Assembly: GCA_025594325.1 (NCBI GenBank)
Contig: JANHCV010000002.1
Coordinates: 186,001-250,000, forward strand
Direction of reading: 5' to 3'
Source: Blastocladiella emersonii ATCC 22665
Lineage: Eukaryota > Fungi > Blastocladiomycota
Length of the DNA: 64,000 nucleotides
Each line of letters opens with the position of its first letter. Position 1 is the stretch's first letter. The position numbers were made by a program, and so were the translations under genes. Positions 35,699-61,418 of the stretch are shown here, piece by piece. The notes beneath the pieces were generated by a model that had not been told where the DNA came from, did not search any database, and saw only the letters and a program-made list of their open reading frames with translations.

Positions 35699-36033
35699 TT
35701 CGCGTTGGTGTTGTCGATGTTGCAGCAAGTCAAGCGTTGCAACGAGTGACCATCAGCTTCATGTGACTGCGGGTCCGGGGAGAATCAGCGGAGTGGAAGT
35801 TCAACGCGACGCGTCGGCTCCCCGCCCGAGCGACTCGGCGGACGGACTCGCGTCGCTCATCTCACCCGAGGCCAGCACTGCGTTCAAACCATGTTTTACA
35901 GGCCGCAGCCAAGTCTGTTACGGCCATGAAAGTGTGTGGGGGAGAGGATACAGAAAAGGGGGAAACATTCAAACACGACGGCAGGGAGCGAGCCAGAGAG
36001 CTTCGTCGCGGTCGTCAGCGAACCGTGCGCCGC

Positions 36034-38583
36034 TCAACGACGGCCCGACTGGCGGCGGTCGGCCGAGGTCGCGCGGCCGTCGGCGTTGGCGGCCGCGGGG
36101 GCGGCCTGGCGCGGGATCGCGGCGAGGAGCGCCGCCGTGACGTTGTTCGGCTGCTGCTGCTGCCACAGCTGCTGCATGAGGGCGAGCGTGGTCATGACGG
36201 GCGAGTACTGGACCTGCGGCTGCTGGACCTGCACCTGCGGCGGCGGCTGCTGCTGGTGGTGGTGGTGGTGCGGGTCGGCCGTGGCCGCGGCGGCGGTCGC
36301 TGCGGTAACGGCCGCATTCGGGTTCTGCATCGCAGCCATGGCCGCGGCCACCATGTACGGGTTCGTCTGCATCTGCGACTGAAACTGGGCCATCATCTGC
36401 ATCATCTGCAGCGCCGCGGCGGGGTTCACGGGCGCATGGAGCCCGGCCGGTGCGAGCTGGACCGCGGGCGGCGGGAGCTGGACGGGCGCCGGCGGGCCCG
36501 CGGGCGGCGGCGGCAGCGCGCGCTCACGCTTGTGCTCGCGGTCGCGCGTGCGCGGCGGCGGGGGCGACCCGCGGCGCGGCGAGTAGGAGCGCTGGCGAGA
36601 CTGGCGATGGGTGCGCGACTGCGACTGCGGCGGAGGGGGCGGCGAAGCGTGGCGCGAGCGCGACGCGCGCACGGGCTCGGGGCTCCAGCTGCGATCGCGC
36701 TGCTGGTGCTGGTGCTGCGACTCGCGCGGGCGCTTGTACTCGGCGGGGTCGCGGTCGCGGCGGTACTCGGGCTCGCGCTCGCGCTCGCGGCGGTACTCGG
36801 GCTCGCGGCGGTACCCGGCGTCGCGGGCGTACTCGGCGTCGCGGGTGCGCGTCTGGCGCGGAGCAGCGGGGGCGTCGCGGCCGTAGCCCGACGACGACGG
36901 CTCGCGCTGCTGCAAGTACTGCTGGCGCGACGAGGACGGAGGCGGCGAGTCGTCGCGGTGCGAGTAGCGCGCGTTGGTCGGCGCGTCGCGGTACTGGCTC
37001 GAGCGGTGCGCGGTCGAGGAGGGACCGGCCCGACTGCGCGGCGGCGAGCGCGAGCGCTGGCGCCCGCCGTTGGCGTACCGCGAGGAGCCGTAGTCGCCGC
37101 GGGCCGCCCGGAGCGAGCACCGCGGCTGAACGACCCGTCGCCCGAGTTCTCGGGCGGCATGCGGCCGGTCTCGACGATGCGCAGGGCCCACACGGGCAGG
37201 AAGCGCTTGGGGATCGACCACTCGCCGGACAGGAGCTGGTGCGGGGCGTCGCTACATGGTGGCGGGCAGAGTGTGAGATGCGGCTCCGAGCGTGAGCCAC
37301 AAGGGAGTCGAAACGTACAGCGAGAGCTTGTCCCACGCGAGCTGGGTGCGCATCGTGTAGTCGTCGAGCTTCTCGCCGTTGAGCGACTCGCACGCGTCGT
37401 TGCGCTCCTTGCTGCTGAAGAACTCGATGTACGCGTAGTACGAGCTAGATCCGAGGCATCGCCATGGGTCAGCTCGGCAACCCGCCAGCGATACATGCCG
37501 CCGAGGCGTGCAACGTACCCCTGCGAGTCCTGGTCGAGCTCAAACGAGTAGATCTCGCCAAAGGCGCCCAGAGTAGCCTTGAGGCGCTCGGCGCGCGGCG
37601 GCTCGGTGGGCTGGTCCTTGCTGGGCACGAGGTCGACGCGCAGCGAGCCCTGGCTCCAGCGGTGCTCGCACGGGGTGCGGCGGCGGACGAGCTCGCGCGG
37701 CAGCATGTAGTGGGCGTCGACCTGGGTGTCCCACTGCTCGCGGCGGTGCCAGTAGGTTTTGGCGTTGATGGCGTCGCGCAGGTCGTTCTACGGCGATGGC
37801 AACGGCGAGGTGAGCCTTGGGGATCGAGTCGAACGAGGTGGAAAGCGACGAAAGCGAAGGCGCTCGAGTCGCAAGCGAGGTGGCGAGCGGCGAACGCGAA
37901 GGGATCCGAGCCATATTCGAGCCGCATAAGGCGGCGAGAGGCGAGCGGCGAAAGCGAAGGAGACCGAGTCGCAAGCGGGGAAGCAGCAAGGCAAAACGCA
38001 AGCGAAAGCGAGAGCAAAAGGGGCGTACGAAGTGCAGGATCGCCTGGAAGTCCTCGCCCTTGGCAAGCACGTCGACCTTGTTGACGCCCTCCTCGCGGGC
38101 GAGCTCGCGGCGGTAGACGTCGACGCGGTGGTGGCCGGGCAGGTTGAGCAGGCGGACGGTGCGGGTCGGGGGAAGCGCCGTGACGCCCGCCGCCGCGTCG
38201 CCGCCCTCGGCAGCCTCGCGGTCGTACCGAGAGAGCTGCTGACCGGGCTCACGGTCGTCCTCGTCCATGGGCTCGTCGTCGCGGTCGCGGTCGTGGTTGT
38301 CGCGATCGTCGCGGTCGTCGTGGTCGTCGCGATCGTGGTCGTCGCGATCGTCACGGTCGTCGTGGTGGTCGCGCTCGTGGTCGCGGTCGTGGTCGCGCTC
38401 GGGCTTGGGGTCGGAGTCGACATGTGGCATGGGCGAGCGCGACGGGGAGCGCATGCGCTCGTGCTCGCGCGGCAGGTAGCGGGTGGGCGACGAACCGGGC
38501 GACGCGGCGGGCGACGGGGCGGAGGCGCGCGCCGCGGCGGCGGCGGCGGTCGCGGAGCGGGTCTGCCGCTGGTTGGTGTCCAT
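36034..38583 (-). pseudogene. SR-like paralog B': mirror copy of B with a net 22-nt deletion (frameshift) early in exon 4 at ~37100
   Basis: Exons 38583-38029, 37787-37519, 37444-37319, then from 37251. Reads GGGCGGCCC-GC-GGCGACTAC where B has 24 nt between the same anchors. The shifted frame stops at 36426; the ancestral frame stops at 36034. Confidence 0.75.
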
Positions 38584-41309
38584 GATGCACCGAGTGGATG
38601 GGGTGGGTGAGCTTGATTCGCTGGCCGGGGGAGCGGAGAAGTGAAAGGCGAGAGAGAGAGAGCGGGCGGCGATCACGCCCACCCGCCTGGCGCGTGGCGA
38701 CCTGCGTGGCGACCACTTCGCACCTCCGCCGCACGCCTTGGACAGCTAAAACCTGCGGCGCCTGCACGCGCACGCACACCAAAAAATCCAGAAGCCAGCT
38801 CTCAATAAATTTCGGGCCCGAGACCTGTGCGAGGTTCGCCCTCGCAGCCATGAATTTGTAAATCTAGTCGTCGGCCGCCCCAAGAGGCGAAGAGGCCGGA
38901 AGGTCATGGAATACAGCAGAACAAAGTCGCCGACAAGTTGCTCAAGGTGCCGCGCCTTGCAACCTCCGTGACGGACTTCAAGCAAATTCGGGTGGGATTT
39001 ACAAGTGCGGGGCGGGCGTCGAACCAGTTGTAAGTAGGTCCAGCTGAAAGTCGATCCAGCGAACGAAACGTCGCGCGGCACGGACTTGGGGCCAAGCGAG
39101 GGCGCAAGCGACTTGAGTGCTGGATCGAAGACTGTGGAAGCGGGCGAGCATAGAACGTGGGCGATACGTAAGCGACAGGCTCCAGCTTGGTGTGGTCGCA
39201 AGTATCGAGGCCAATCGTACCCGAAGGCCGTGTTGAGTTGAAAAGCGTCGTGTCGAGCCGAGGCCAAAGAGTCAAAATTGACCTTGGAACCGTTGGAGTT
39301 GGTGGAAATCGAGTGTGAAGGACTTGTTGGCGATTTGACGTCGAACAGCGACCAGGCCGAGGTGCTGGGCAAGAAAGGGTGCTACGGAGGTGACGAAGAG
39401 AGAAGTGTCAACAAGCGAGCGACGCGCCGTCGTCGCGTATGCGCAATCTTAGCGGCTCGAGCAGCGCCATCGAGTCGTTCAAAAGCGGAGACGGGACTAC
39501 CGAAGCGATGATGAAGGGCTTGGATGCTGACGCGAGCCGGGGGTTCGAGCCGCCGGTCCGATCGCCGAGAAGCGTTGATGTACGAGGACACTGGAATGTC
39601 CACGTTCGAGCCGCGCTACGTACCGACAGGTTGGCGCAGTAAACCAAAAGCGAGAGCTGAGACCACGGAAAACCTCGATGTTCTCGAAACTAGGTGAGAT
39701 TAGGGCGTGAAGAAGATCCATTCGGGCACGAGTTGCGTGTCAAGCAGTCCGAAAGTCGAGAACACGACACGGGAAGCGGAGGAGAGCAATCGGTGCGTGC
39801 GCCCACCGCCGACTCGACGTCGCCGAGTTTCAGGGCGGGCGCAGGAGGAGCATCGAGGTCGACGTATCTGTCATAAAGAGCAGAGTGCATGAGGTCGCAG
39901 CTTGGCTCGGGGCTTACATTCGCTAGCATGAGGTGGGGTGGTGGGGAGCGGGAGCGGTGGCGGCGGTGGGAGCCGCTTTGGCCACGCCGCTCCCTCCGCC
40001 ATCACGCGCTGTATCGCGATGCTCCTCATGCGCGGCGAATACGTCCTCGCCGCTCGAGTATACGCTCAGCTTATGGGTAATGATAGCTGAAGCCTTGTGC
40101 GATCATCATCGCGCGAGTCACCGCCCGCGTCGCGGTGGAGTCCTCCAACGATGGCCGCGGGCACCACAACCTCACACCATGACGATGGCCGCGAGCACGA
40201 TCGCGACTCCGCGATACTTGTACACAACAGCCCACCCACCCTATATCTCTCCCGCTCACATCGCCACACGCCTCCTACACCTCCCCCGGCTCGGGCGACG
40301 ACCCGATCCCAAGCAGCTCCCGCTGGAGCGCGAGCGATCGCGACCCTCCGCTGCTGCCAACCCTGTCCGCGACGGGCCGCTCCGGCGTCGGCTGCGCCTG
40401 CATGAAGGAGCTTGCAAGCATGGACCCGGGCTGCAGCATGGCCGCGGGCACCGCGACCGCCGTAGCGGGCGCGAGGAACTGCTGGATCCCCGCGGCGGCG
40501 CTGAGCTGCTGCTGCTGCGCCTGAGCCTGCGCGAGTTGCTGGAACACGGCGGCCTGCTGCTGCTGCTGTTGCGCTGCCGCGTTCGATTGCTGTTGTTGCT
40601 GGAGCAGGGCAGCCTGCTGCTGCACGGCATTCGTCTGCTGCTGCTGTTGCTGGAGCAGCGCGGCCTGGAGCGTCGCCTGCAGCTGGAGGTACGGCTGCAT
40701 CACCTGCTGCATGAACGGCGCGAGCGCCGCGGTCAAGTCCATTGTGATCGGGTCCACCACCACCTGCGCGGGCACGACCTCGTCCACCACCTCCCCGGGC
40801 TCGGGCGACGGGGACCGCGAGGAGCCCGTGCTCATGGGCGAACGAGACCGCGACCGCGACCGTGAGACCGAGCGTGAACTAGAGCGGGACCGCGACCGCC
40901 GCGGCGAAGGCGACCGCGACGCGGTACTCGATCCACGGCTGTCCCTGCTCCGGCCGCGCGTAGACGAGCGGCCGCGGCGCGAGGAACCGCGGTCGCGGTC
41001 ACCGTCGCCGTCGGTCGCGTAGCGCGCGAGCCGCGGACGATCCCGAGTGCGGTCACGCTCGCGGTCGCGACTATCAGACCGCGAGCGGCCGCGGCCCGCT
41101 TCCCGCACGGGCGGCGGCGAGTAACTACGCCCGCGACGGCTTGCGGAGCGGGAACGGGAGTGCGACCGACCGCGCCTGCTCTGGGCGGCAGTTGCGGTTG
41201 GTGCGGCGGGCAGCCTGCATTGACGCTCCAGGGCCGCGGCCCAGTTGGGCAGCAGGTGCGGGGCGAGCTTGAGTGCGCCCGTGACGATCTGACGCGAGAT
41301 ATCACTGTT
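37120..41309. repeat. Apparently identical 4,190-bp core of the large inverted repeat, left copy
   Basis: All mirror ORFs have coordinate sums of 97198 and identical translations. First mismatches at 37119/60079 and 41310/55888. Confidence 0.92.
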
Positions 41310-42224
41310 TTCACACGTGAGGGCGGGGGTGAGCATGAGGGCGGACACGGGTGGCGAGAGAAGAACGTACACTGCGTCCCAGTCCCACGAGAGCTCGGCC
41401 GTGATCTCAAACCCCTCGAACTCGTCGCCGTCGAGCCGTTCGCGGGCGAGGAGGCGGTCACGGATATCGTACCACTCGACGTGGGCGACGTACGTGCTAC
41501 ACGGTGCGAACAGCGATGAGCAACCAACCTCGAAACCAGCGTCAGACCCGAGCAAGCGCACCTAGCTGACTCGGCGACGAGCTCGAACATGCGGACCTGG
41601 CCGAACCGGGCGACGAGCTTCTTGAGGCGGTCGGGGCGGGGCGCGCGGTCCCTCGCGCTGCCACCGGTCGAGATGCGGCGCAGCAGCATGCGGATCGACC
41701 CCTGGCTCCGGCGGTAGTCGCACGGGGTGCGGTGGCGGACGCACTCGTTGGGCAGCATGTAGTGGGCGCGCATCAGGACGCCCCACATCTCGCGCAGGTG
41801 CCACGCGCCCATGGCCATTTCGGCCGCGCGGAGATCGTACTAGGCATCACGGGTTGTGAGCGGGGCACCAACTGGAACGAGCGACGCGGGTACGTACAAA
41901 CTGCACAATGGCGCGGTAGGCGCCGCGCGGGCGGTGGTCGGACCGGGGCACGGCGCGGTCGCAGCTGAGCCGGACAAAGGCGACGCCCGGGTACCGCGAC
42001 AGCTCGCGGTGGCACTTTTCGGGGCTGACCCACCCGGGCACGCCCAGCAGCCGCACGCACCGCGACGGCGGCGGCGTCGTGTACCCTTCGCTGCCGTCGT
42101 CCGAGTCTAGGTCGTCGTCCGAGTAGTAGTCGCTGTCCGAGGCGCCCGCGTCCGCGCGAGACGCCGCGGGCTGCGGGTCGCGGTCGAACCGCGACGAAAA
42201 GGTCTGAGATCGGTTGCTGCTCAT
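40275..42224 (-). CDS. SR-like paralog C: 2 RRM-like + RS + poly-Q tail, 586 aa; exons 42224-41898, 41839-41562, 41496-41371, 41304-40275
   Basis: Introns of 58, 65 and 66 nt (phases 0,2,2). CVRLLGVPG, YVAHVEWY, long RS tract and Q-rich block. Confidence 0.82.
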
Positions 42225-42487
42225 GTTGCGCCGACTCGGGCTAGGTGTCCATGGAGTAGTGCGTAGGAGGTGACGGATCAAGGTTGGATCCAGAGCGAAC
42301 GAGCGGAAGCAAGCAAGCGGCCAGCTCATTGCGCGTGACTCGATCTTGCGCCGCCGCTCAGCAACGCAGCACGTCTCGCACCCCTGCGCGTCACGGGCAC
42401 GTCTCCATCTCTCACCAGTCCCGGGTTGTGCCATCGTATCTGTACATTCACGATCGGTACAAGTCCAAACTCACAAATCGCGCGTCC

Positions 42488-44312
42488 TCACGAGGCGGGC
42501 CGCCGGCGCGGATCGCTCGACTGCGGACGGCTCGCCTCCGCCGCCGCTGCTCCCGGTGCCGCTTGCACCCCATTCACACCATTTTGCTGCTGCTGCATAC
42601 CACGCGCAAACGACGCCAAGAGGTCCGCGAGCGAGTTCCCCGCTTGCGGCGCAAACGGCGACCAGAACGGGTTGCCCGACATCTGCATGGCCGCGGCGAG
42701 CTGCTGCATCGGGTTCGGGGCGGGCGGCGGCGGTGCGCCCGATGCGGCGGCAAGCAGGGTGGCGAGGTTGGCGGGCGGCGCGAACGCGGGCGGGGGTCCT
42801 GGTGCCGGCGCTGGTGCGCGCGGGGCCGACGAAGCAGGCGCGCGATCGAGCGAGGCTGCCGAGTCACGGAGCTCGCGCGGCTGCGGAGCAGGTGCTTGTG
42901 CGCGGGGCGACGTGATCCGCGCCCGCGACGACGGCGGCGGGGACGCGTCCCGGCGCGCGTTTGAGCGAGCGGGTGACCGGCTGCGGCGGCGCGGATCGCG
43001 GCGACTCGATGGTGGCGGCGGCGGCGACGATGTGCGGCTGTGCCTACGCTCTCGGCGCGGTGGCGAGCGTGAACGGGACCGGGACCGAGGGCGGTTCCCC
43101 CCGCGGCGATCACGATCACGATCACGGTCGCGGTCGCGGTCACGGTCGCGGCTTGGACTCCGCCGCCGCGCGCCGGTACGGTTTCGGCTTGGGCTATGGC
43201 TTCGCGACTGTCGGCGGGCGCCGCGGGCGCGGTGCGGGCTCGGTGAACGGGCCGATCGCGAGCTGCTAGGCGCAGACCGGCGAGGCGGCGGTGGCGAGCG
43301 GCTCCGCGGGCGAGGGCGCAGGCGCGGGATCGTGATCCCGGCGGGCGGAGGTGCGGGTGCGCCGGAGCCGGACGCAAGCTCCGCCATGCGCTTGTTGCGG
43401 AGGTGCTGCTCGATGCACTGGCCGGCCCACGCGGGGAGGAAGGCGCGCGGGACTTTGGTGGTGCCGTCGAGGACCTCGTTGACAAAGTTGCTACACGGCG
43501 GATGGGACGTCGTGAGTTGGCCGGAGTGGCATGAGCGAGGGCAGAGCAGGGGAGTACGTACATGGTCGACTTGTCGTAGGCAAGAACCGCGCTCAACCGG
43601 AACCCGTCGAGCCGGCCGACGTACTCGTTCAGCTTGCGGTACGCGTCCAGCCGCTTGCCCGAGTCGTAGTATTCGGCGTAGGCAAACCACTCGCTAAACA
43701 GCAATCTTCGCGTCAGCTCTCATCGCCCTCCACGCGCGAACGCACAAATCCGTACCTCGGCGACACCTGCTGAAGCTCAAAGTCGAAAAAGTCGCCGTAG
43801 CTCGCGAGCAGTTTCTGGAGGCGCTGCGGGCACGGCGGCGCGACGGGCTCGGCTCCGGGCTCACCCCGCAAGCTGATGCGGAGCGACCCGACGCCCATGC
43901 CGTGCGGGCACGGGACGCGGTCGCGGAGGGGCTCATTGGGCAGCTTGAAGTGGGCCGTGATCTCGGCGTCCCAGTGCACGCGCTTGTGCCAGTAGTCGCG
44001 CGCCTTGATGGCGTCGCGCAGGTCTTGCTACGGCGCGCGGAAGGCGCGTGGGGCGCGCGGTTCGCGTCAGCCGGGGACGGCGGGCGTCGGACGCATGCGC
44101 GAGGGTGAGGGTGAGGGTGGGCGTACAAAGTGCATCATGGCCTGGAACGTGTTGAACGGCTTCCCGCGCTTGTGCATCACGTCGACGGAGAAGGTGCCGC
44201 GGAACGCCTTGAGCTCCCGCTTGTACTCGTGCGCCGTGCCCCGGCCGGGCAGGCCGAGCAGCCGGATCGACCGCGCCGCGGGGATGTGCGACAGGTCGAC
44301 GTCGTCGTTCAT
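42488..44312 (-). CDS. SR-like paralog D: 2 RRM-like + RS/RD + Pro/Gln tail, 530 aa; exons 44312-44127, 44027-43756, 43693-43562, 43490-42488
   Basis: Introns of 99, 62 and 71 nt (phases 0,2,2). SIRLLGLPG, WFAYAEYY and RSPSRDRDRDRDRDRDRDR. Confidence 0.82.
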
Positions 44313-44615
44313 GTTAATCAGTGGAGCTTCATAGGTTCGCGTGTGCTGCGGGGGAGAGGGGAAGGCGCGAGCGCAAGGCTCCCCTGAAGACACCGGGCGA
44401 GAGCGAGCGGAGAGAAGGAAAAAATGCGACGCGCTGCGCCCCAGCGACGCGTCAGCCCGCATCACCTGACCTTGAACACACTCCCCGCCTGCACGGCCGC
44501 CACTGCGAGCCACGCGCCGCCGCGACGATCATCGTTGGCGCCAGACGACGACGTCGGAGGGTAACCTGCACGCAGCACAAACTCACAGTACCTGCAACGC
44601 ATCAACACATTCACC

Positions 44616-46312
44616 ATGTCGGCGCGGCCCTCCTCCGGAACCAAGGCGGTGGTGGTCAAGGAGCCGCTCGCGACCAAGGGCGCGACCATGGGCGCGGGCC
44701 GGACGCTGTCGCGCGGCAAGGGCCTCGCGGCCGCGCGCGCGACGGCGGCGGCCAAGGCAGCGGCCAAGGAGGCGCGCGAGAAGCGCCTGGACACCAAGGT
44801 GCTGCTGACGCAGGACGCGGGGTACCTCGAGGCCGAGGAGCCCATGGAGCGCACGCACAAGCTGGCGCAGGACGTGCTGCGCGACGAGCACCTGGACCTG
44901 ACGAACCAGGCCAAGGTGTTCCAGCTGCAGCTGCCCGAGTTTGGCCCCTACGGCGCGCTCGACTTCACGCGCAACGGGCGGCATCTGCTGCTCGGCGGGA
45001 AGAAGGGCCACGTCGCGGCCATGGACTGGAAGCGCGGCAAGCTGCACTGCGAGCTGCACCTCGGCGAGACGGTGCGCGACGTGTGCTGGCTGCACAACGA
45101 GTCCATGTTCGCCGTGGCGCAGAAGCACGCCGTGTACATTTACGACAATACCGGGCTCGAGATCCACGCGCTCCGCAAGCACCGCAACCCGCAGCAGCTC
45201 GAGTACCTGCCGTACCACTTTTTGATGGCGTCGATTGTGCGTTCTCGCTCGCTACAACTCCTACTCGATGCATGCTAACCACCCTGAGAACTGAATAGGG
45301 CGACCCAGGGATCATCACGTACCAGGACGTGTCGACGGGGATGGTGTCGGGCGAGCTGTCGACCAAGCTCGGCAAGTGCCAGGTGATGACGCAGAACCCG
45401 TGGAACGCGGTGCTGCACTGCGGGCACAGCAACGGGACCGTGACCATGTGGGCGCCCAACTCGGGGGTCCCGCTGGTCAAGATGCTGACGCACCGCGGTG
45501 CGCTGACGGCCATGGCGGTGGACCCGCGCGGGCGGCACATGGCGACGGCGGGCGTCGACGGGCAGATCAAGCTGTGGGACCTGCGCAACGGGTTCAAGCC
45601 GGTGCACCAGTACTTTTCGCGGGCCGCGGTCAAGGACCTGAGCTTCTCGCAGCGCGGCCTGCTCGCGGTCGGGTGGGGCACGCACACGACGGTGTGGAAG
45701 GACGTGGCGGTGCCCGACGCCAAGGCGCACGCGCCGTACATGACGCACACGATCGGCGGCGGGTCGCAGGCGGCGCGCGTGCAGTTTGTGCCGTTCGAGG
45801 ACGTGCTCATGTACGGGCACGACGGCGGGGTCGGGACCATGGTGGTGCCCGGGGCCGGCGAGCCCAACTACGACGCGCTCGAGGCCAACCCGTACGCCAA
45901 CTACAAGCAGCGGCGCGAGGCCGAGGTCAAGCAGCTGCTCGACAAGCTCCCCGCCGACTCGATCTCGCTCGACCCGAACGCGATCGGCGCCCTGGTCACG
46001 GCCAAGGACGGCCGCGCCGCGCACTTGCCGGGCAGTCGCGAGCGCGAGGCGCCCGCGCCGCTCGACGACGAGCCCGCCGACAACGAGGACGAGGCGACCA
46101 AGCAGCGGCGCGAGAAGCGCGAGAAGAACACGACGTCGGGCATCAAAAAGTACCTGCGCAAGCAGACCAACGTGATCGACGCCAAGAAGGCCAAGCTGCG
46201 CGCCGACATGGAGCGCAAGCAGCGGCAGCGCGACCGCGGGGCGTCGGCCGAGGACGCGGCGGGCAACCCGCTGGCGCGGTTCCGTGCGCCCGCGCTGGCC
46301 AAGAAGCCGTGA
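44616..46312 (+). CDS. UTP7: U3 snoRNP/SSU processome WD40 protein Utp7 (WDR46/BING4), 544 aa, join(44616..45236,45299..46312)
   Basis: FGPYGALDFTRNGRHLLLGGKKGHVA, YLPYHFL, YQDVSTG, and BING4CT-like PGAGEPNYDALEANPY...RREAEVKQLLDKLP. 62-nt intron with a GCTAAC branch point. Confidence 0.93.
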
Positions 46313-47717
46313 TGACGGTGGGCGGCGGCGGTAGATAGAATATTAGTGTAGTCATTCTGTATCCATGCTCGGCCGGGACGCGTGTGCGACATGTTGATCG
46401 GAGGCGTGATCGGGCGGGGATGCACGCACACGCGCGTCGCGTCACAGCACGGCGCGCGGCGGTGGGAGGTGGGCGACGCGGCGCCCATGGCCGCCGCCAA
46501 CGCGCAAAAAGACGGGTCGCGACCGCGCCGATCGGGTGGGACGTGGAGCGCAGCTGAGGCGACGTGCGCGTTGGTTGCGGTGGGGCGGGGGCGAAGAAGA
46601 CCGATGCGGACGCAAGCCGCGCGCGTGTGGCGCGCCGGCAGGGCGACTGACGGTCCCTTCCCTTCCCCTTCCTCCTGCCCCGCAGCGGCTCTCGCTCCCG
46701 CACCGCGCGCTTCCTGCAACCCCCGCTCCCCGCCCCGCTCGCTGAATACGGCGCGACTTGCTGCACTGCGCTCGCGTCCGCTGCCCCGCCCGCTCCTGCG
46801 TCTGCGCATCCATCCGCCCGCGACTCCCGCCCCTCGACCGGTCGTGCCGCGCCGCGCATCCATCCATCCGACCAAAGACGCTGCCCCCCTGCGCGTCCCG
46901 CCCACCACCCACCTCGCCGCGCTGCAACAGCACCGCGCGGCCGTCCCGCCACCACCGTATGTGCTGTGCTTGTTACCGACCCGCCCTCCCCCATCACGGC
47001 GCACCCCGCCCGTCCCGGACCGCGATCGCGGCGAGCGACGCAAACTCAGCGCGCGGGCCGCAGCGATTGCCCGTGCGGATCGGGGCGTGCGTGGTGGCAG
47101 GCCAGCCTTGTTTGTGCGCGCGCTCCCGCCCGCCCGCCCGTTTGCCCCGTCCCGGCTGCCCGCACCGACGCCGAGTCCGGGGCACCGCCACGCACCCCCC
47201 CGATGGACCGCGCAGTCCGGGCGCGGCGGCCTGGAATCGGCGTCCCTCCGTGGCGGCCGCGGGCGGCGAGATCGGGGCGCGCGAGTCGCGGCCCGCGTGT
47301 CCGCGCCGCCGCTGCGTGTGTCCCCCGCTCTCCGCCGCTGCCGCCGATGGACCAGTCACGGTGGCGCCGTGACGTGGGCGCGCGCGCGCATGTGCAGTGC
47401 AGTCGCGGCCATTGCTGCGCGCGCGGCGGCGGCGCGTCGCCCCGATCATTGCTCCTCCCGCCCCGTTCGATTCGATTGCCCCGTTCCCCGCTCGATTGCC
47501 TTTTCGCTGATTGCGTGTCGTGCCCGATTGCACTTGGCTCACCTTTGCCCGCTCGCTCGTCTGCGTCCACCCTCCCGCCCATCCTCCTCACCACCGCACC
47601 AACCCGCTCGCTATGCGCGGCCCCACCACCACCCCCGGCCTTCTCTCCACGGCACCACCACCACTCGTCTCCGCAACAGTACCAGCTCCCGCACCGACAC
47701 CACCAGCATCCGCCACC

Positions 47718-50700: not shown

Positions 50701-51491
50701 AGCAGCGCGAGAAGATGCGCGGGTGGACGGTCGGCGTGTTGCGGGACCAGCAGGCTGGCGGCGTAGCGCAGACGGCGCAGGTCGCCGAACAGCAGCAGCC
50801 GATGCCGCAGCAGCAGCAGGTGATGGTGCCTGAACATCAGCGCCCGCGGCCAGTGTATGCGCCGCCGCAGGGACCGGTCCACCAGCAGCAGCAGCAGCAG
50901 GTCGGCGGGTATCACCACCACCACCACCTCGGCCAGGACTACCCGCCCGCCCCACCGCCACCGCCGCCGCGGCATGACTATGACTACGACTACGAGTACG
51001 ACGACCGCGAGTACGGGTACGACTACGACCACGGCTACGACTACAACGGCGGCGCTGGGTACGACCGCCCGCCGCAGCGCGCACGGTACCCTCCGCCACC
51101 ACCACCACCACCGCTGTCGCGCCGGTACCCCGCCCACGACGCGTACCAGGACGCGTACCCGCCGCACCCGCACCACCACGCTCGGCCGCACTCGAACGAG
51201 TACCGCCACCCGCCGCCGCCGCCGCCGCTGCCCCCACACGTGTCGCGTGCCGCCCCACCGCGGCAGCAGCAGGCGTGGGACGCACCTCCGCCGCCGCCGC
51301 CGCCTCGCCAGCACCACCACCAGTACAGCTATCCCCCACCGCCGCCGCCGCCGTCGCAGCAGCCGCCGCAGCGGCACCACCGCGACCGGCCAGAGTACCG
51401 CCACGGCGGCGGCGGGCGCGGCGGAGTCGCGTCGTCGTACGACGGCGCTGCGCCCGCGCCCGCGCCGACGTCGGCGGCCGGTCGAGATTGA
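47718..51491 (+). CDS. GATA zinc-finger transcription factor (CX2C-X18-CX2C) with N-terminal PAS-like region and long P/Q/H/Y low-complexity regions, ~1,132 aa, join(47718..47869,48245..51491)
   Basis: CVRCGTTESPEWRRGASGARELCNACGLKY. ATG in CCGCCACCATGG. 375-nt intron GTACGT...GCTAAC...CACAG. The PAS-like call is tentative. Confidence 0.8.
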   Translation: MVATLVVSNEQFELIWRAQTYCFMTTQAIHDLKRVHPAFLRAKALTGTAFTYVLLILRSARFAAAARRVAELPRAAVCNARANGGGASWEAPVGDTGDTGDMGDMGTRPLSPPCIPACIPAVAAPPPPNAAATEGTPAEGGCPIAPLHRCSLLGGPRPAVRTPTLHHANRPRPLHRTSGRRYWRNLPLPQPPEHVPDPLSVLNPTTWPEEVEEMQLAINMFYLDRDFCLWTVHPPGEPAVLAATVRILDFARLVRWMRPEKPAPRDPRRRTLLVVAATDCSVIAKYPPSATDIPVELGDALLPLVPESELQKLDPDKHRELFRSVAPRRLRVPGVNGAPDADFACVPIQLADGWILIIEEEEHQEQPAEPAAITVVEDVVPAEPAPVVVELGADEIEALVAPVAPAPEAPATAAPEPAAPEPAAPEPAAPEPAAPEPAAPAPAPVLEPAIVPAATAATSTASLNALASVASAAMSTVDHLPVVAPPPAAAAPAPPAEPAPALLTTAPLPPTLPAVSTVLDTIASPTYAPLSASSATGAIPPPLSPIGLSMGQLEQVPAHVPIVGASSDVHLQYQYPTASATPAPLALEPPAHTSAAVTTSSALAMHHSHSHSYAHPAVANLYPPTSAWTGNRAGPPLASPTFRPQLPDHQQLLPPPVGPVRDAFDAPAPYPRKPPQQQYHPHHATEYDRYPDPTPAPAGYYDDADHDYADPRHAYRPPAPAPATAGLDEYGFAQPRAAAAAPRYPQHQYQQQQAPPPPLTTVWPPGMRRAREAAAAAASDEYAPLPPHHHHHRPAPAPRGYDRFHPYAAAAGHEQQPHHRVASPPLSSVPLPPTAEDTFASLAAPAATPADAAPAPAPARPRPRPHRRSRAAAVAATVAAAAAAGESDPAAPCLLRTASGSSIGVLALEDPPTDPAPKVPVAPIAAVPSAADAATASAVMAAAAAVPVPSSRFAPPGERKCVRCGTTESPEWRRGASGARELCNACGLKYYREKKQREKMRGWTVGVLRDQQAGGVAQTAQVAEQQQPMPQQQQVMVPEHQRPRPVYAPPQGPVHQQQQQQVGGYHHHHHLGQDYPPAPPPPPPRHDYDYDYEYDDREYGYDYDHGYDYNGGAGYDRPPQRARYPPPPPPPPLSRRYPAHDAYQDAYPPHPHHHARPHSNEYRHPPPPPPLPPHVSRAAPPRQQQAWDAPPPPPPPRQHHHQYSYPPPPPPPSQQPPQRHHRDRPEYRHGGGGRGGVASSYDGAAPAPAPTSAAGRD
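48960..49034 (+). repeat. 15-bp coding minisatellite (CCTGAGCCCGCTGCG)x5 encoding PEPAA x5
   Basis: Five exact copies read directly from the sequence. Confidence 0.95.
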
Positions 51492-51603
51492 TGGATGGAT
51501 GCAGAGTTCCGTTTTGTTCATCTCGGATAGGGTTGCTCCCTATCGACGTGCATACATCTATCGGTTCATAGTCGATTTGGACAGACTCGAGGATGAGCGC
51601 CGC

Positions 51604-52442
51604 ATGTCGTTCCGCCTGCTTTTCTCGATTCTTGGCGGCCTCGCTGTGACGGCGGTGTGGCCGCTGCTCTTCCTTGGCCATCGGACGGGTGTGCAGTGCT
51701 TTCTCCAGGTCGCTATCCTCACCTTCGCGTGGGCCGTGATTCTCGCGTGCATGGCCGTCCAGGATCTTCGGGTCTGCTTGATCGTCTCGAGCCCACTGCG
51801 ATGCGTCGCGAGCGATGTGACGCGGGCACTACGGGTCTTCATTCTTGCCATTGTTCTCCTGCAGTGCCTCGGGCCGCTGCTGTGGGGGCTCGTCAGCTCG
51901 CCGGCAGCGACCATGTGCGTCGTGGCCAACGAGTGGGAGGACCTGAAGTGTTCCGCGGGCGCGACTCGTCGAACGGGTGGACGGGCACGACGCGCGCGGG
52001 CGTCGAGTCCTCGCTCGTCACGAACATCGGCTCGGCTGCATCATCGAGCTACCGCGCCCCGGGCTCCATGCCTCGCGGCACGTCGTGGTCGAGCGACGGC
52101 AAGTCCAGCAGCGCTCCAATCCACACGAGCGAGCTGGCGCTGCGCGCCGCCGCGTCCTCGTTCCTCGTCGAGCTGACACCGTGTGTGCCCTGCCAGCTGC
52201 GCGTGTTTCCTGACCAGGCCGTGCTGATCGCGACCGAAAGACCGGGCAACCCGCTGTTCCGCGTGGCCATCGTGCTGCGCACGCTCACGGCTGTTGACTA
52301 CGTCTCGGCGTCGCAGACGTGTCGCCGCCTCCAGCTGCGCGGCCGCGTCGTGGATATCGTTGGGTCCGCGGCGACGAGCGCGACGCTCGTGCTGTGGAAA
52401 CAGGTCTTGGGCACGTTTGTGCGCGAGGAGCCGGAGCGATGA
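51604..52442 (+). other. Possible small membrane-protein gene split over two frames (about 3 hydrophobic helices, then a frame change near ~51930-51960)
   Basis: Frame 1: MSFRLLFSILGGLAVTAVWPLLFLG...VAILTFAWAVILACMAV...VFILAIVLLQCLGPLLWGLV. Frame 2 continues with a globular-looking tail to 52442. No convincing intron found. Confidence 0.3.
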
Positions 52443-52679
52443 TGCTCCGCGTGCGTGATACAACATCTTTTGTTTACTCGGACTATCTTTGTGCTGCGTG
52501 ATCTGGGAGTGGTGTCGGGCATCCCCTCATGTCGTGATGCGGAGTTGATCGCGCAAGTCGCAACAGGGATGGTCGCGACGAACGCGACATGACGCGCCGC
52601 GCCACTCATGTGATCGAATTCGATTCTCTTTACCCAGTGAATCAATCGCAACGATACTATGCGTCTATTGAACTCGTCT

Positions 52680-55241
52680 CTACTTGGCGTCCTTGCTCAC
52701 CGCCACTGGCGTGGGCCCCGACGCAAACTCGTGCTCCAGAATCGCCTTGTTCACCGCCTGATACGTCGTGTGCCCGGCGAGCTGAAGCAGGTGTGCGTAC
52801 TGGCGGACGTACTCGAGGACGCGCGGGTCATTGAGCTGGCGGTTCTCGGCAATCTCGACCGTGACGAGGGTGCCGATGAACTTGGCATCGGCCTTGAGCC
52901 CGCGCGACGGGACGATCTCAGTCGCAACGCGCAGCGCCGCGGACACGTCGTGCAGGCGCAGGTACGCCTCGACGGCGGACGTCCAGACGTTGATCCCGCG
53001 GCCGCCCCACGCCGCGCCGAGGATCTTGTTCACCGTAGCGTCGAGCCGAGCGCGGTCGCCGGCGAACCCGCACGCGTCGAGGACGAGCGCCTGCGTCGCG
53101 CCGTCGGGCGCGATGCCGCGGTCCATCATCGCGTCCCACAGCTCGAACACGCGGTCGAACCGCTTGCCGAGCGAGTACCCGAGCACGAGCATCGACCGGA
53201 TCGGGTGCCGCGGGTGCACCACGACGCCGAGCGACTGGCCGAGCGCGAGCATCTGCTCCATGCGCGGCACGTCGCCTTGCTGCGAGAAGTGGTTGATGAA
53301 GAACCCGAGCGTGCTCGTGGACGGCGCCACGCCGTGCTCCGCGAGCGTCGACCGCCACACGCGCAGCGCGTCGCCCACGCGATCGGCCGCGAGCAACCGC
53401 TCGACCTGCGTGTTGATCTCGTACTCGATGGCGTCGGGTGAGCTCGGGTTCGCGGCCGCCGGGTTGCCCGGCGCAGCACTCGCGGGCGCGGCGCCGAGTT
53501 TACCCGTCACCGTGGGCGGCGCGATCTCGAGCGGCTTGCGCCCGGGCGGCCGGCGGTACTCGAGCATGTGGACGACGGTCGCGTGCGTCGGCGCACCGAG
53601 CCGGACGAGCTTGTGGTACACGGCGACCGCGGCGTCGTACCCGTCCGTCGCGAGGACGGACTTGACCGCCGCCGTGACGTACTGCGACGTGAGGACGACG
53701 CGGCCGGCGCGGTGGTGCGCGAGCGTGTCAGCGTGCATCTGGCGGACGACGTCGCCCTTGCCGAGCGCGGCAGCGGCCTCAAGCGCCATGCACGTGAGCC
53801 GCGAGGTCGCGACCTCGCCCGCGCTGACGTACTCGGCGTACTGCGCGAGCGCCGCCGCGTAGTCCTCGCAGTGCAGCTGCAGCGCCATGAGCGCGTACAT
53901 GGCGTTCTCCTCGAGCGCGATCCCGTGCGCGCGCGCGAGCGCGACGACGGATTGCGCGAGATCGGCCTTGCGCTCGATCGAGCACCGCTCCAGCACCCGC
54001 GCCACGACGCGCGGGTTGTGCGTCGCGTGCGCGTACGCGTCGAGGCCCTCGGCGCCGGCTGCGCGCGGGATCCCACCGGCGGGCGGCGGGGTGCCGCGGT
54101 CGAGCATCTCGCGGAACGCAGCGACGGCAGAATCGGCGTCGGGGCTCGCGTTCACGAGCGCGACGTTGAGGTGGCCCGAGTCAAACGGCGTCGCGATGAA
54201 CCCGCGTTGCGCGGCCGACTCCATGACCTCGCGCACGCCGGTCGCGTCCTTGACGGTCGCCATGGCGGAGGCCGCGGTCGTCATGATGTGCACGGACATG
54301 GCGGCATCCGGGATCTGCGTGCGGTACACGTCGAGCGCGCGGTGCGGGAGACCGGTGCGCGAGAACATGTTGATGAGGCCCGAGTAGAATTTGGACAGGT
54401 CGCCCAGGTTGAGCGGCGCGGTCGGCGGCGGGCGGCGCGACAGGAGCTCGGTCTCGAAGGCCGGGACGCGGGTGCCGAGTTGCCGCCGCGCGATGAGGCG
54501 CGCGAGCGCGGACAGCGTGAAGTCGTTCGGGAACCACGACAGGGCGGGGTCGCGCGAGAGCTCGACGACCTTGGCGAAGAGCAGGTCGTAGCACTCGTCC
54601 CACTGCGGGCGCTGGTCGGCCGTGACCATCGGGCAGCTCGCGAGAATGGTCGAGAGGGTCGACATGACCTGCTTGGTGTCGTCGCGCAGAGCAAAGGCCA
54701 CCGTCAGCGCGTCCTGCGCGCCCCGCGGGTCCTCTACGCGTGCGAGGGATTCGGTGAGGCTGGAGCATGGAGCCGTAGCTATGGTAGTCGACAGCGTACT
54801 CTTGTTCATGGCCTTGAGCAACATCTGCACCGACGGGAAGTAGGCCGGCGGGTAGAGTGGCGGCCGCGAACGCTCTGACTTCTGCCCCTTTTGGCTTTTA
54901 CCGGGAACATCGCGCTCAGAGGAAGAAGAAGAGAAGCTCGGCAGGACCACGTTGTCGGTGCGCCGAAGCACGGGCTCGTCTGGGCGCGGGTACCCCGGCC
55001 GGCCGCCGCTGCCCAAGGGGCGCTTCGGCTTGGACTGGCGGGGATCGGCGTCGCGCTGGCGCTGCTGACCCTCGGAGCGCAGTTTCGGTTTGGGTTTGCC
55101 GCTCGGCGGACCATGCCTCCGCGGCGAGCCGCCGTTGTTGTTGTTGAGAAGCAGTGCCGACGACGCGATCGTTCGCCGAGGCGCCAGCTGGTAGAGGGTG
55201 CCGCGCGGGGCGAGATGCATCAAGTTCCGTATAGATTGCAT
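52680..55241 (-). CDS. Pentatricopeptide-repeat (PPR) protein, probably mitochondrial, 853 aa
   Basis: PPR-like helix pairs (YSGLINMFSRTGLPHRALDVY; LVLGYSLGKRFDRVFELWDAMMDRGIAPDGATQALVLDAC; VWTSAVEAYLRL). Basic, acid-free N-terminus from ATG 55241. Confidence 0.85.
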   Translation of the reverse strand: MQSIRNLMHLAPRGTLYQLAPRRTIASSALLLNNNNGGSPRRHGPPSGKPKPKLRSEGQQRQRDADPRQSKPKRPLGSGGRPGYPRPDEPVLRRTDNVVLPSFSSSSSERDVPGKSQKGQKSERSRPPLYPPAYFPSVQMLLKAMNKSTLSTTIATAPCSSLTESLARVEDPRGAQDALTVAFALRDDTKQVMSTLSTILASCPMVTADQRPQWDECYDLLFAKVVELSRDPALSWFPNDFTLSALARLIARRQLGTRVPAFETELLSRRPPPTAPLNLGDLSKFYSGLINMFSRTGLPHRALDVYRTQIPDAAMSVHIMTTAASAMATVKDATGVREVMESAAQRGFIATPFDSGHLNVALVNASPDADSAVAAFREMLDRGTPPPAGGIPRAAGAEGLDAYAHATHNPRVVARVLERCSIERKADLAQSVVALARAHGIALEENAMYALMALQLHCEDYAAALAQYAEYVSAGEVATSRLTCMALEAAAALGKGDVVRQMHADTLAHHRAGRVVLTSQYVTAAVKSVLATDGYDAAVAVYHKLVRLGAPTHATVVHMLEYRRPPGRKPLEIAPPTVTGKLGAAPASAAPGNPAAANPSSPDAIEYEINTQVERLLAADRVGDALRVWRSTLAEHGVAPSTSTLGFFINHFSQQGDVPRMEQMLALGQSLGVVVHPRHPIRSMLVLGYSLGKRFDRVFELWDAMMDRGIAPDGATQALVLDACGFAGDRARLDATVNKILGAAWGGRGINVWTSAVEAYLRLHDVSAALRVATEIVPSRGLKADAKFIGTLVTVEIAENRQLNDPRVLEYVRQYAHLLQLAGHTTYQAVNKAILEHEFASGPTPVAVSKDAK

Positions 55242-55797
55242 GGTGTGGTTGGGCGTGTGCGAGGAAGGGAACTGGCGAAGAACACCGCGCTGAGCGCTCG
55301 CGCTTGTCGTCAAGGAAGCGAGCATCACGTGCGATGCGAGACACGTTTGTCTCTCGCGTGCTATCGCTTGGCGATGAGCCGCGCGTCCTCGCACACCGCA
55401 ATTCGATGAGCCGTGCTGGAACTGCGGCGCTCCTCCCGCCGCGTCGACCAAGCCCGGCTCCAAGTCGGGCGTCACGGCCGGGGCCCGCGGCGAAAGCGGC
55501 GGCTGGGAGCCGTCGGTGCCGCAGATGTACGCGCCGCGCGCGTGGCCGTACGTGCACGGCGGCGACGACGCGTAAGGGCCGCCGCCATCGTGGTTCTACG
55601 GCGCCCGCGGCCACCGCGGTGCTCCCGTCTGCTACGTGCCCGTTCCCGTCGCCGTCCCTGTCTCGGCAAGCGGTTCGGCCAAGGTCGGAGCGGGTGAGAA
55701 CGACGGCCCCACGGCGTCCAAGCGCCCGGCGGCCCGCGGAGGCGACGAAGAATGGTCAGACGAGTTTTTCGAGCAGTTGTATGCTCGTTAATCGTGA

Positions 55798-56923
55798 GCC
55801 GAGCTCTCGTGAGACTGGGATGCAGTGTACGCGATCCAAACCCACTCTCGCCCCGCCATTTGGCATACGCTCACCTCGTGTGTGATTGAACAGTGATATC
55901 TCGCGTCAGATCGTCACGGGCGCACTCAAGCTCGCCCCGCACCTGCTGCCCAACTGGGCCGCGGCCCTGGAGCGTCAATGCAGGCTGCCCGCCGCACCAA
56001 CCGCAACTGCCGCCCAGAGCAGGCGCGGTCGGTCGCACTCCCGTTCCCGCTCCGCAAGCCGTCGCGGGCGTAGTTACTCGCCGCCGCCCGTGCGGGAAGC
56101 GGGCCGCGGCCGCTCGCGGTCTGATAGTCGCGACCGCGAGCGTGACCGCACTCGGGATCGTCCGCGGCTCGCGCGCTACGCGACCGACGGCGACGGTGAC
56201 CGCGACCGCGGTTCCTCGCGCCGCGGCCGCTCGTCTACGCGCGGCCGGAGCAGGGACAGCCGTGGATCGAGTACCGCGTCGCGGTCGCCTTCGCCGCGGC
56301 GGTCGCGGTCCCGCTCTAGTTCACGCTCGGTCTCACGGTCGCGGTCGCGGTCTCGTTCGCCCATGAGCACGGGCTCCTCGCGGTCCCCGTCGCCCGAGCC
56401 CGGGGAGGTGGTGGACGAGGTCGTGCCCGCGCAGGTGGTGGTGGACCCGATCACAATGGACTTGACCGCGGCGCTCGCGCCGTTCATGCAGCAGGTGATG
56501 CAGCCGTACCTCCAGCTGCAGGCGACGCTCCAGGCCGCGCTGCTCCAGCAACAGCAGCAGCAGACGAATGCCGTGCAGCAGCAGGCTGCCCTGCTCCAGC
56601 AACAACAGCAATCGAACGCGGCAGCGCAACAGCAGCAGCAGCAGGCCGCCGTGTTCCAGCAACTCGCGCAGGCTCAGGCGCAGCAGCAGCAGCTCAGCGC
56701 CGCCGCGGGGATCCAGCAGTTCCTCGCGCCCGCTACGGCGGTCGCGGTGCCCGCGGCCATGCTGCAGCCCGGGTCCATGCTTGCAAGCTCCTTCATGCAG
56801 GCGCAGCCGACGCCGGAGCGGCCCGTCGCGGACAGGGTTGGCAGCAGCGGAGGGTCGCGATCGCTCGCGCTCCAGCGGGAGCTGCTTGGGATCGGGTCGT
56901 CGCCCGAGCCGGGGGAGGTGTAG
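55798..56923 (+). pseudogene. Remnant of paralog C: decayed end of exon 3 and intron 3, plus an intact copy of exon 4
   Basis: GCCGAGCTCTCGTGAGACTGGGATGCAGT|GTACGC versus C GCCGAGCTCTCGTGGGACTGGGACGCAGT|GTACGT (TGG>TGA). Identity starts at 55889, within the acceptor AACAG. Confidence 0.85.
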
Positions 56924-59900
56924 GAGGCGTGTGGCGATGTGAGCGGGAGAGATATAGGGTGGGTGGGCTGTTGTGTACAAGTATCGCGGAGTCGCGATCG
57001 TGCTCGCGGCCATCGTCATGGTGTGAGGTTGTGGTGCCCGCGGCCATCGTTGGAGGACTCCACCGCGACGCGGGCGGTGACTCGCGCGATGATGATCGCA
57101 CAAGGCTTCAGCTATCATTACCCATAAGCTGAGCGTATACTCGAGCGGCGAGGACGTATTCGCCGCGCATGAGGAGCATCGCGATACAGCGCGTGATGGC
57201 GGAGGGAGCGGCGTGGCCAAAGCGGCTCCCACCGCCGCCACCGCTCCCGCTCCCCACCACCCCACCTCATGCTAGCGAATGTAAGCCCCGAGCCAAGCTG
57301 CGACCTCATGCACTCTGCTCTTTATGACAGATACGTCGACCTCGATGCTCCTCCTGCGCCCGCCCTGAAACTCGGCGACGTCGAGTCGGCGGTGGGCGCA
57401 CGCACCGATTGCTCTCCTCCGCTTCCCGTGTCGTGTTCTCGACTTTCGGACTGCTTGACACGCAACTCGTGCCCGAATGGATCTTCTTCACGCCCTAATC
57501 TCACCTAGTTTCGAGAACATCGAGGTTTTCCGTGGTCTCAGCTCTCGCTTTTGGTTTACTGCGCCAACCTGTCGGTACGTAGCGCGGCTCGAACGTGGAC
57601 ATTCCAGTGTCCTCGTACATCAACGCTTCTCGGCGATCGGACCGGCGGCTCGAACCCCCGGCTCGCGTCAGCATCCAAGCCCTTCATCATCGCTTCGGTA
57701 GTCCCGTCTCCGCTTTTGAACGACTCGATGGCGCTGCTCGAGCCGCTAAGATTGCGCATACGCGACGACGGCGCGTCGCTCGCTTGTTGACACTTCTCTC
57801 TTCGTCACCTCCGTAGCACCCTTTCTTGCCCAGCACCTCGGCCTGGTCGCTGTTCGACGTCAAATCGCCAACAAGTCCTTCACACTCGATTTCCACCAAC
57901 TCCAACGGTTCCAAGGTCAATTTTGACTCTTTGGCCTCGGCTCGACACGACGCTTTTCAACTCAACACGGCCTTCGGGTACGATTGGCCTCGATACTTGC
58001 GACCACACCAAGCTGGAGCCTGTCGCTTACGTATCGCCCACGTTCTATGCTCGCCCGCTTCCACAGTCTTCGATCCAGCACTCAAGTCGCTTGCGCCCTC
58101 GCTTGGCCCCAAGTCCGTGCCGCGCGACGTTTCGTTCGCTGGATCGACTTTCAGCTGGACCTACTTACAACTGGTTCGACGCCCGCCCCGCACTTGTAAA
58201 TCCCACCCGAATTTGCTTGAAGTCCGTCACGGAGGTTGCAAGGCGCGGCACCTTGAGCAACTTGTCGGCGACTTTGTTCTGCTGTATTCCATGACCTTCC
58301 GGCCTCTTCGCCTCTTGGGGCGGCCGACGACTAGATTTACAAATTCATGGCTGCGAGGGCGAACCTCGCACAGGTCTCGGGCCCGAAATTTATTGAGAGC
58401 TGGCTTCTGGATTTTTTGGTGTGCGTGCGCGTGCAGGCGCCGCAGGTTTTAGCTGTCCAAGGCGTGCGGCGGAGGTGCGAAGTGGTCGCCACGCAGGTCG
58501 CCACGCGCCAGGCGGGTGGGCGTGATCGCCGCCCGCTCTCTCTCTCTCGCCTTTCACTTCTCCGCTCCCCCGGCCAGCGAATCAAGCTCACCCACCCCAT
58601 CCACTCGGTGCATCATGGACACCAACCAGCGGCAGACCCGCTCCGCGACCGCCGCCGCCGCCGCGGCGCGCGCCTCCGCCCCGTCGCCCGCCGCGTCGCC
58701 CGGTTCGTCGCCCACCCGCTACCTGCCGCGCGAGCACGAGCGCATGCGCTCCCCGTCGCGCTCGCCCATGCCACATGTCGACTCCGACCCCAAGCCCGAG
58801 CGCGACCACGACCGCGACCACGAGCGCGACCACCACGACGACCGTGACGATCGCGACGACCACGATCGCGACGACCACGACGACCGCGACGATCGCGACA
58901 ACCACGACCGCGACCGCGACGACGAGCCCATGGACGAGGACGACCGTGAGCCCGGTCAGCAGCTCTCTCGGTACGACCGCGAGGCTGCCGAGGGCGGCGA
59001 CGCGGCGGCGGGCGTCACGGCGCTTCCCCCGACCCGCACCGTCCGCCTGCTCAACCTGCCCGGCCACCACCGCGTCGACGTCTACCGCCGCGAGCTCGCC
59101 CGCGAGGAGGGCGTCAACAAGGTCGACGTGCTTGCCAAGGGCGAGGACTTCCAGGCGATCCTGCACTTCGTACGCCCCTTTTGCTCTCGCTTTCGCTTGC
59201 GTTTTGCCTTGCTGCTTCCCCGCTTGCGACTCGGTCTCCTTCGCTTTCGCCGCTCGCCTCTCGCCGCCTTATGCGGCTCGAATATGGCTCGGATCCCTTC
59301 GCGTTCGCCGCTCGCCACCTCGCTTGCGACTCGAGCGCCTTCGCTTTCGTCGCTTTCCACCTCGTTCGACTCGATCCCCAAGGCTCACCTCGCCGTTGCC
59401 ATCGCCGTAGAACGACCTGCGCGACGCCATCAACGCCAAAACCTACTGGCACCGCCGCGAGCAGTGGGACACCCAGGTCGACGCCCACTACATGCTGCCG
59501 CGCGAGCTCGTCCGCCGCCGCACCCCGTGCGAGCACCGCTGGAGCCAGGGCTCGCTGCGCGTCGACCTCGTGCCCAGCAAGGACCAGCCCACCGAGCCGC
59601 CGCGCGCCGAGCGCCTCAAGGCTACTCTGGGCGCCTTTGGCGAGATCTACTCGTTTGAGCTCGACCAGGACTCGCAGGGGTACGTTGCACGCCTCGGCGG
59701 CATGTATCGCTGGCGGGTTGCCGAGCTGACCCATGGCGATGCCTCGGATCTAGCTCGTACTACGCGTACATCGAGTTCTTCAGCAGCAAGGAGCGCAACG
59801 ACGCGTGCGAGTCGCTCAACGGCGAGAAGCTCGACGACTACACGATGCGCACCCAGCTCGCGTGGGACAAGCTCTCGCTGTACGTTTCGACTCCCTTGTG

Positions 59901-60078
59901 GCTCACGCTCGGAGCCGCATCTCACACTCTGCCCGCCACCATGTAGCGACGCCCCGCACCAGCTCCTGTCCGGCGAGTGGTCGATCCCCAAGCGCTTCCT
60001 GCCCGTGTGGGCCCTGCGCATCGTCGAGACCGGCCGCATGCCGCCCGAGAACTCGGGCGACGGGTCGTTCAGCCGCGG
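55889..60078. repeat. Apparently identical 4,190-bp core of the large inverted repeat, right copy
   Basis: Reverse complement of 37120-41309. Confidence 0.92.
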
Positions 60079-61279: not shown

Positions 61280-61412
61280 GCGAGCGGTGGACGGTCCACC
61301 GACGGACGACCGCGACGACCGTGACAAAGCTGACCCGGACCATTCGCCCCGCTATCTTGTTTGAGTGTTTCTCCTGTTCTGTATTCTCTCCCCCACACAC
61401 TTTCATGGCCGT

Positions 61413-61418
61413 AATAAA
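61413..61418 (+). terminator. Candidate polyadenylation signal AATAAA of gene B
   Basis: AATAAA ~135 nt after the B stop, inside a 60-nt block conserved with the left arm, where it reads AACAGA. Confidence 0.45.

Follow-up and report, generated by a model that had tools for sequence, protein, structure and literature searches.

According to our analysis, a stretch of 64,000 nucleotides of the genome of Blastocladiella emersonii ATCC 22665 (assembly GCA_025594325.1, contig JANHCV010000002.1, positions 186,001 to 250,000; hereafter the window, in whose numbering positions are given) carries an inverted segmental duplication of part of a cluster of RRM genes. Its two copies are real, and they have probably been homogenised by arm-to-arm gene conversion. 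Each arm is about 7.6 kb long, and within these older, diverged arms lies an island, the core, over which the two copies are letter-identical. The arms enclose a loop of 14,579 bp and carry, together with the loop and the adjacent sequence, seven paralogous genes, which we refer to as A, A', B, B', C, D and E, and an orphan last exon of C (psiC). The coordinates of all features are collected in Table 1.

A base-by-base check showed that positions 37120-41309 are the exact reverse complement of 55889-60078, with 0 mismatches in 4,190 bp, the introns and a 1.7-kb intergenic spacer included, as the original prediction, made from the letters of the window, had stated. The repeat finder delimited the arms at 37100-41309 and 55889-60098, 14,579 nt apart, with mismatches on the diagonal only at 37116 and 37119; going outward from the core, 37119 and 37116 are the first differences. 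From B and B', the core includes all introns, exons 1-3 and the beginning of exon 4; it further comprises the spacer and the last exon of C. At its outer edge, two substitutions and a 22-bp indel fall within 21 bp, and its inner edge lies in intron 3 of C, 5 nt upstream of the acceptor of the last exon (AACAG). The tRNA and Rfam scans of the window found no RNA elements, so the conservation of the spacer has no RNA gene to explain it. A scan of the window for tandem repeats returned only coding low-complexity repeats.

The same prediction held that homologous but diverged sequence continues on both sides of the core, and this was borne out. Outward, the identity falls by tiers, at least four with the core included (Table 1), and the homology of the arms at the protein level stops at 33767 and 63433, near the stops of A' and A (tblastn). 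Inward, the homology collapses within about 90 bp: some 56 bp of C intron 3 are barely alignable, positions 41366-41399 agree with 55798-55831 at 32 of 34 letters (the 3' end of C exon 3), and beyond them the sequence has decayed with many indels. This 34-bp patch sits isolated between the barely alignable intron and the decayed exon, and it may represent a separate short conversion patch or chance (post hoc P ~0.01).

The tiers differ too strongly to be of one age. There are 0 differences in the 4,190 bp of the core, against 8 in the adjacent 857 bp and 11-33% farther out. At the rate of the adjacent tier, the chance of finding no difference in the core would be about e^-39; therefore, the core cannot share the age of that tier. 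The duplication itself is old, as indicated by the synonymous (dS 0.40) and nonsynonymous (dN 0.23) divergence of the conserved exon of A and A'. Taken together, the tiered identity outward and the decayed homology inward support the view, already put forward in the prediction, of an old duplication with a recently homogenised core.

The read-derived evidence shows that the genome holds two inverted copies with distinct flanks and an indistinguishable core. The assembly (PMC9730499) was made from PacBio HiFi reads with a mean length of 10.5 kb (6.4 Gb in total, ~186x coverage of a 34-Mb genome) and polished by Pilon with Illumina reads of 65-75 nt. We used Logan contigs from four runs of one sample in one study (X1-X4), and these were compared with the window over 36200-42150. 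In X1 the core is represented by two contigs, 37120-38302 and 38274-41309, with 0 differing letters and with ends exactly at the edges of the core. Their depths are 283 and 271 (range 270-283), against 126 for the loop-side contig 41280-42150. The corresponding depths of core and loop are 47.6 and 21.2 in X2 and 11.1 and 3.2 in X3, so that the ratio is ~2.2 in X1 and X2 and 3.4 in the low-coverage X3. Outside the core, the X1 contigs hold alternative alleles at 36451 (T>C), 36554 (G>T), after 36626 (+12), and at 36701 (-6), 36770 (G>C), 36850 (C>G), 36862 (A>G) and 36867 (C>T). All of those in the 99% tier are exactly the alleles of the right arm, and the window's own letters at these sites occur at about single-copy depth. 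A contig of X3 leads from the core into sequence that differs from the window from 41310 on at 25 positions and by 5 gaps, and this sequence is the inner junction of the right arm. No variant letters were found in the core among the contigs of X1-X3. Thus, the doubled depth of the core, the breaks of the contigs at its edges and the recovery of both versions of the flanks together establish two copies with distinct flanks.

This result bears directly on the possibility of an assembly artefact, in which two similar copies were collapsed into one sequence that was used twice, or an inverted duplication was created falsely. The original prediction had named assembler collapse as its main alternative and had proposed the depth and the variants of the core as a check, which we carried out at the contig level. 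A consensus or polishing step could produce a perfect identity over 4 kb, and the assembly was indeed polished with short reads. Nevertheless, the core is covered about twice as deeply as the loop rather than at single-copy depth, the contigs break exactly at both edges of the core, both the outer and the inner versions of the flanks were recovered, arm-specific differences just outside the core survived the polishing, and the mean HiFi read is long enough to span the 4.2-kb repeat. We therefore consider an artefact highly improbable, and collapse cannot be retained as the main alternative.

Two further observations were made on the same contigs. A right-arm-type contig (36771-37098) with a depth of ~264x could be taken for a sign of a third copy; this candidate was rejected, because ~84% of its 31-mers are common to both arms and a mean of ~1.84x is then expected. 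In X4, contigs have loose ends at window positions 38072 and 39088, which correspond to a loxP linker and are an artefact of a mate-pair or 454 paired-end library, not biology.

The locus thus combines two inverted copies, an identity of the arms far above that expected from the age of the duplication, and a unique single-copy spacer, which are the marks of a gene-conversion palindrome. We suggest that, long ago, an inverted copy was made of about 7.6 kb of a tandem cluster of two-RRM, SR-like genes. The copied stretch would have extended from within C exon 3 across B as far as the 3' end of A. The copies would then have diverged, and non-reciprocal recombination between the arms would have overwritten their middle part at least twice. 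An older conversion tract may have reached 36267 and now shows about 1% difference, whereas the latest, very recent tract would correspond to 37120-41309, where no differences are present. This latest tract appears to have halted where the homology fails, that is, at the diverged C intron 3 on the inside and at the two substitutions and the 22-bp indel on the outside. Resolution of the same intermediates by crossover would invert the 14.6-kb loop. We infer both conversion as the mechanism and heterology as the cause of the ends of the tracts.

The gene B' provides a further trace of these events. Its RS/Q tail is shifted out of frame with the RRM exons by the 22-bp indel, and the old frame of the tail is still open for ~370 codons, which fits a recent frameshift. 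The frameshift looks recent, and it looks to have been missed by the latest conversion tract by 1-21 bp.

The order of the genes raises the question of whether the loop has ever been inverted. In the assembly, the order is D-C-B'-A' on the left and psiC-B-A-E on the right. Of the two possible orientations, only the flipped loop gives the collinear order D-C-B-A-E on one strand, and psiC-B'-A', which is truncated, frameshifted and more derived, then stands alone. The gene E is equidistant from A and A' (50-51% amino acid identity), which indicates that it predates their split, and no remnant of an E' was found left of A'. One duplication followed by one arm-to-arm crossover is the simplest explanation of this order. 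Based on the geometry of the array, we consider it about as likely as not that the loop was inverted one or more times during evolution.

Several points speak against the reading proposed here. The past inversion has two rivals, which would also give the present order of genes: a larger ancient palindrome that later lost E' on the left and D with the 5' part of C on the right, or a duplicate copy that was inserted beside E by chance. The run data probably also underlie the assembly; the contigs made from them do not depend on the assembler, but they come from the same DNA preparation. Since contigs may lose variants, the core could still contain a rare arm-specific one, and short-read polishing by Pilon could, in principle, have removed a very few true differences. 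Finally, concerted evolution over time is deduced here from one genome.

If conversion maintains the arms, the loop may also be flipping at present. In a passive inversion polymorphism, crossovers between the identical cores would be so frequent that the culture contains nuclei or cells of both orientations in appreciable proportions. Such a polymorphism is compatible with the homogenised duplication described above, to which it adds only the ongoing flipping. Recombination has ample substrate in 4.19 kb of perfect inverted homology, there has evidently been more than one conversion, and the geometry of the array suggests at least one historical flip. The inversion is also gene-neutral, so that nothing selects against it. 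On the other side, the HiFi assembler resolved one orientation in a contig of 2.84 Mb, and in the best-studied palindrome resolution by crossover is rare in comparison with conversion (PMC3723533). A crossover within the identical core makes no new junction and leaves no k-mer trace in contigs. In our estimation, such a polymorphism is unlikely, though it is the strongest of the rival accounts of the present state of the loop.

A broader version of this idea, in which the loop flips today as part of a genome-wide habit, with dozens of gene-bearing inverted duplications kept letter-identical by very frequent intrachromosomal recombination, seems to us doubtful, and more so than flipping at this locus. 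If it were true, the nuclei would carry a mosaic of inversion isomers, and copy correction by palindromes would be a general mechanism outside sex chromosomes. To our knowledge, no sexual cycle is known in B. emersonii.

Whatever its orientation, the loop encodes the same genes. The last exon of C, the spacer, the promoters and the 5' halves of B and B' are present in both cores, and hence inversion changes no gene: after a flip, the 5' exons of C would be followed by a last exon of the same sequence, and the upstream region of the PPR gene would abut an identical core. Any flipping would therefore be a passive by-product and not a switch. This distinguishes the locus from the flip/flop mating-type (MAT) switching of methylotrophic yeasts (Ogataea, Komagataella), where a segment of tens of kb can invert between identical inverted repeats that measure a few kb. 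Only the geometry is common to both. At the B. emersonii locus, no MAT genes or silencing boundary were found, inversion changes no transcription unit, and one orientation is known, from the assembly.

A programmed switch of this type, in which a regulated inversion of the loop would change how the C/D cassette or B/B'-A/A' is expressed, can be considered in view of the identical inverted repeats around a gene-bearing loop and of the gene C, which spans the boundary of loop and arm. It is opposed by the sameness of the transcription units in either orientation, out to 4.19 kb on both sides. In addition, there is no AT-rich, centromere-like or telomere-like boundary beside an arm (the GC content is 0.61-0.74), and the locus lies 186-250 kb into the 2.84-Mb contig. 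The presence of a second perfect inverted repeat in the same window also points to a generic process. The Pfam scan of 38 reading frames, of which 23 lie within the loop and arms or next to them, revealed only GATA, PPR, WD40/BING4, RRM, MFS, HAD, HAM1 and LEA_2 domains; none of the frames was a recombinase or a gene of the HMG, homeodomain or alpha-box type, in a scan that is non-exhaustive for small exons. The GATA factor, which is positioned mid-loop, is the only regulator among the scanned frames. For these reasons, a programmed switch is very improbable.

Comparison with known systems places the locus within a familiar kind of structure: it is an ordinary, though unusually legible, case of gene conversion between inverted duplicates. 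In the palindromes of sex chromosomes, the identity of the arms is kept up by conversion tracts of 2 to >9 kb, and inversion of the spacer by crossover is a rare event (PMC3723533). The human Y palindrome P6 (PMC3723533) resembles our locus in its inverted arms, its unique spacer, an identity of >99.9% in the converted part, tracts of several kb and a spacer that crossover would invert. The B. emersonii locus differs in that it belongs to the nuclear genome of a fungus, in which no sex chromosome is known, its arms are 7.6 kb and its core is 4.2 kb long, its identity is only an island in diverged arms, its genes encode RNA-binding proteins and are not testis gene families, and its evidence comes from one genome and not from a comparison of species. 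In Caenorhabditis, long inverted repeats of homologous gene pairs are actively maintained (PMC1803023). They share with the present case an autosomal location, a kb scale, nearly perfect inverted repeats that include genes with the complete intergenic sequence, and their reading as maintained by conversion. The maintenance was shown there across three species, whereas here it is deduced from the tiers of identity in one genome; furthermore, the spacer of our locus is large (14.6 kb) and contains three unrelated genes.

The features that make the locus legible are the nested tracts of different age, the ends of the tracts at heterologies, the frameshift just missed by correction, and the gene order that suggests one 14.6-kb flip. 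The words "inverted" and "palindrome" are absent from the genome paper for ATCC 22665 (PMC9730499). Two letter-perfect inverted duplications nevertheless occur within this one window. The locus may serve as one data point toward the question of how far the use of palindromes in an early-diverging fungus matches that in sex chromosomes.

Table 1. Features of the inverted duplication, its loop and the RRM gene cluster (positions in the window)
Feature	Position	Strand	Basis or remark
Whole left arm: A', B', spacer, 3' part of C	33767-41399	.	blastn, tblastn, global alignment to right arm
Left-arm interval	33767-35266		67-78% identity to right arm (global alignment)
A', diverged two-RRM paralog	33767-35752 (approximate)	-	tblastn to A; 67% amino acid identity to A
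Left-arm interval	35267-36266		80-89% identity to right arm (global alignment)
B'	36037-38583	-	5' part identical to B; tail 99% identical, out of frame through 22-bp gap
99% tier, left	36267-37119	.	98.4-99.6% identity per 250-bp bin; 8 substitutions and indels of 12, 6 and 22 bp
Left core copy, letter-identical	37120-41309	.	0 mismatches, 100% identity to right arm (global alignment); read-derived contigs end at 37120 and 41309, depth ~2x loop
C	40275-42434 (5' limit approximate)	-	last exon 40278-41304 in core; exons 1-3 in loop
Single-copy loop	41310-55888	.	14,579 bp; loop-side contig depth 126 in X1, 21.2 in X2
D, RRM paralog in loop	42650-44312 (3' limit approximate)	-	NCBI gene call, alignment
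UTP7/BING4 WD40 gene	44616-46312	+	BING4CT domain, E = 2.6e-36; NCBI model 544 aa
GATA zinc-finger gene, 1,293 aa	47718-52442	+	Pfam scan, NCBI gene call
PPR gene H9P43_002022, 695 aa	52680-54910	-	Pfam, protein search, NCBI call; open frame continues upstream to 55595
Whole right arm: C exon 3 remnant, orphan C last exon, spacer, B, A	55798-63433	.	blastn, tblastn, global alignment to left arm
Decayed remnant of C exon 3 3' end	55798-55831	+	32/34 identical to 41366-41399
Right core copy, letter-identical	55889-60078	.	inner junction present in a contig of run X3
Orphan C last exon (psiC)	55894-56923	+	NCBI gene call on its last 155 codons (56456-56923)
B, two-RRM protein, RS/RD-rich and Q-rich tail, 760 aa	58615-61279	+	three-frame reading, NCBI call
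99% tier, right counterpart	60079-60963	.	arm alignment
22 bp of B exon 4 that B' lacks (gap between 37098 and 37099)	60100-60121	+	1-21 bp outside core edge
A	61618-63436 (approximate)	+	NCBI model 61759-62398, 172 aa; homology to A' reaches 63433
E, 444 aa, in tandem next to A	64088-66162 (window-equivalent, beyond window)	+	RRM family alignment

Genes were called from frame-specific GC content at third codon positions (GC3), Pfam, three-frame reading and the NCBI gene calls; the gene limits in the left arm are our own approximations. In the alignment, A, A', B, B', C, D and E have a conserved exon structure and prove to be paralogs within a single divergent family of two-RRM proteins, whose tails are rich in RS/RD and in Q. 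The seven genes lie within 33 kb, the seventh member, E, just past the end of the window; A', B', C and D are on the minus strand, and psiC, B, A and E are on the plus strand. An atlas look-up for the family gave generic RRM neighbours only.

The content of the loop agrees with the predicted one: UTP7, a GATA factor, a PPR gene, the RRM paralog D and exons 1-3 of C, as supported by the BING4CT hit, Pfam and the NCBI calls. The protein search with the PPR frame of the loop returned only proteins of B. emersonii ATCC 22665, namely H9P43_002022 (96%) and its paralog H9P43_001991 (77%). The latter lies ~97 kb upstream on the same contig (record 131182-153318), in a different neighbourhood with Maf, guanylate cyclase and Dna2.

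Other repeats are present in the window. The second perfect inverted repeat, found by self-BLAST, consists of 15734-17803 and 21311-23380 (2,070 bp, with a spacer of 3,507 bp) and has sharp edges and no flanking homology. Its left arm starts inside a truncated 3'-end copy of a HAM1-like gene, the full copy of which is located at 23183-24826 on the minus strand. A giant stop-free frame at 3463-15255 on the plus strand (3,931 codons, GC3 0.94, with a LEA_2 match) contains a direct tandem repeat of 1.75 kb, 8593-10335 and 10411-12147, with 77% identity. Unlike the nearby inverted repeats, this direct repeat has not been homogenised.

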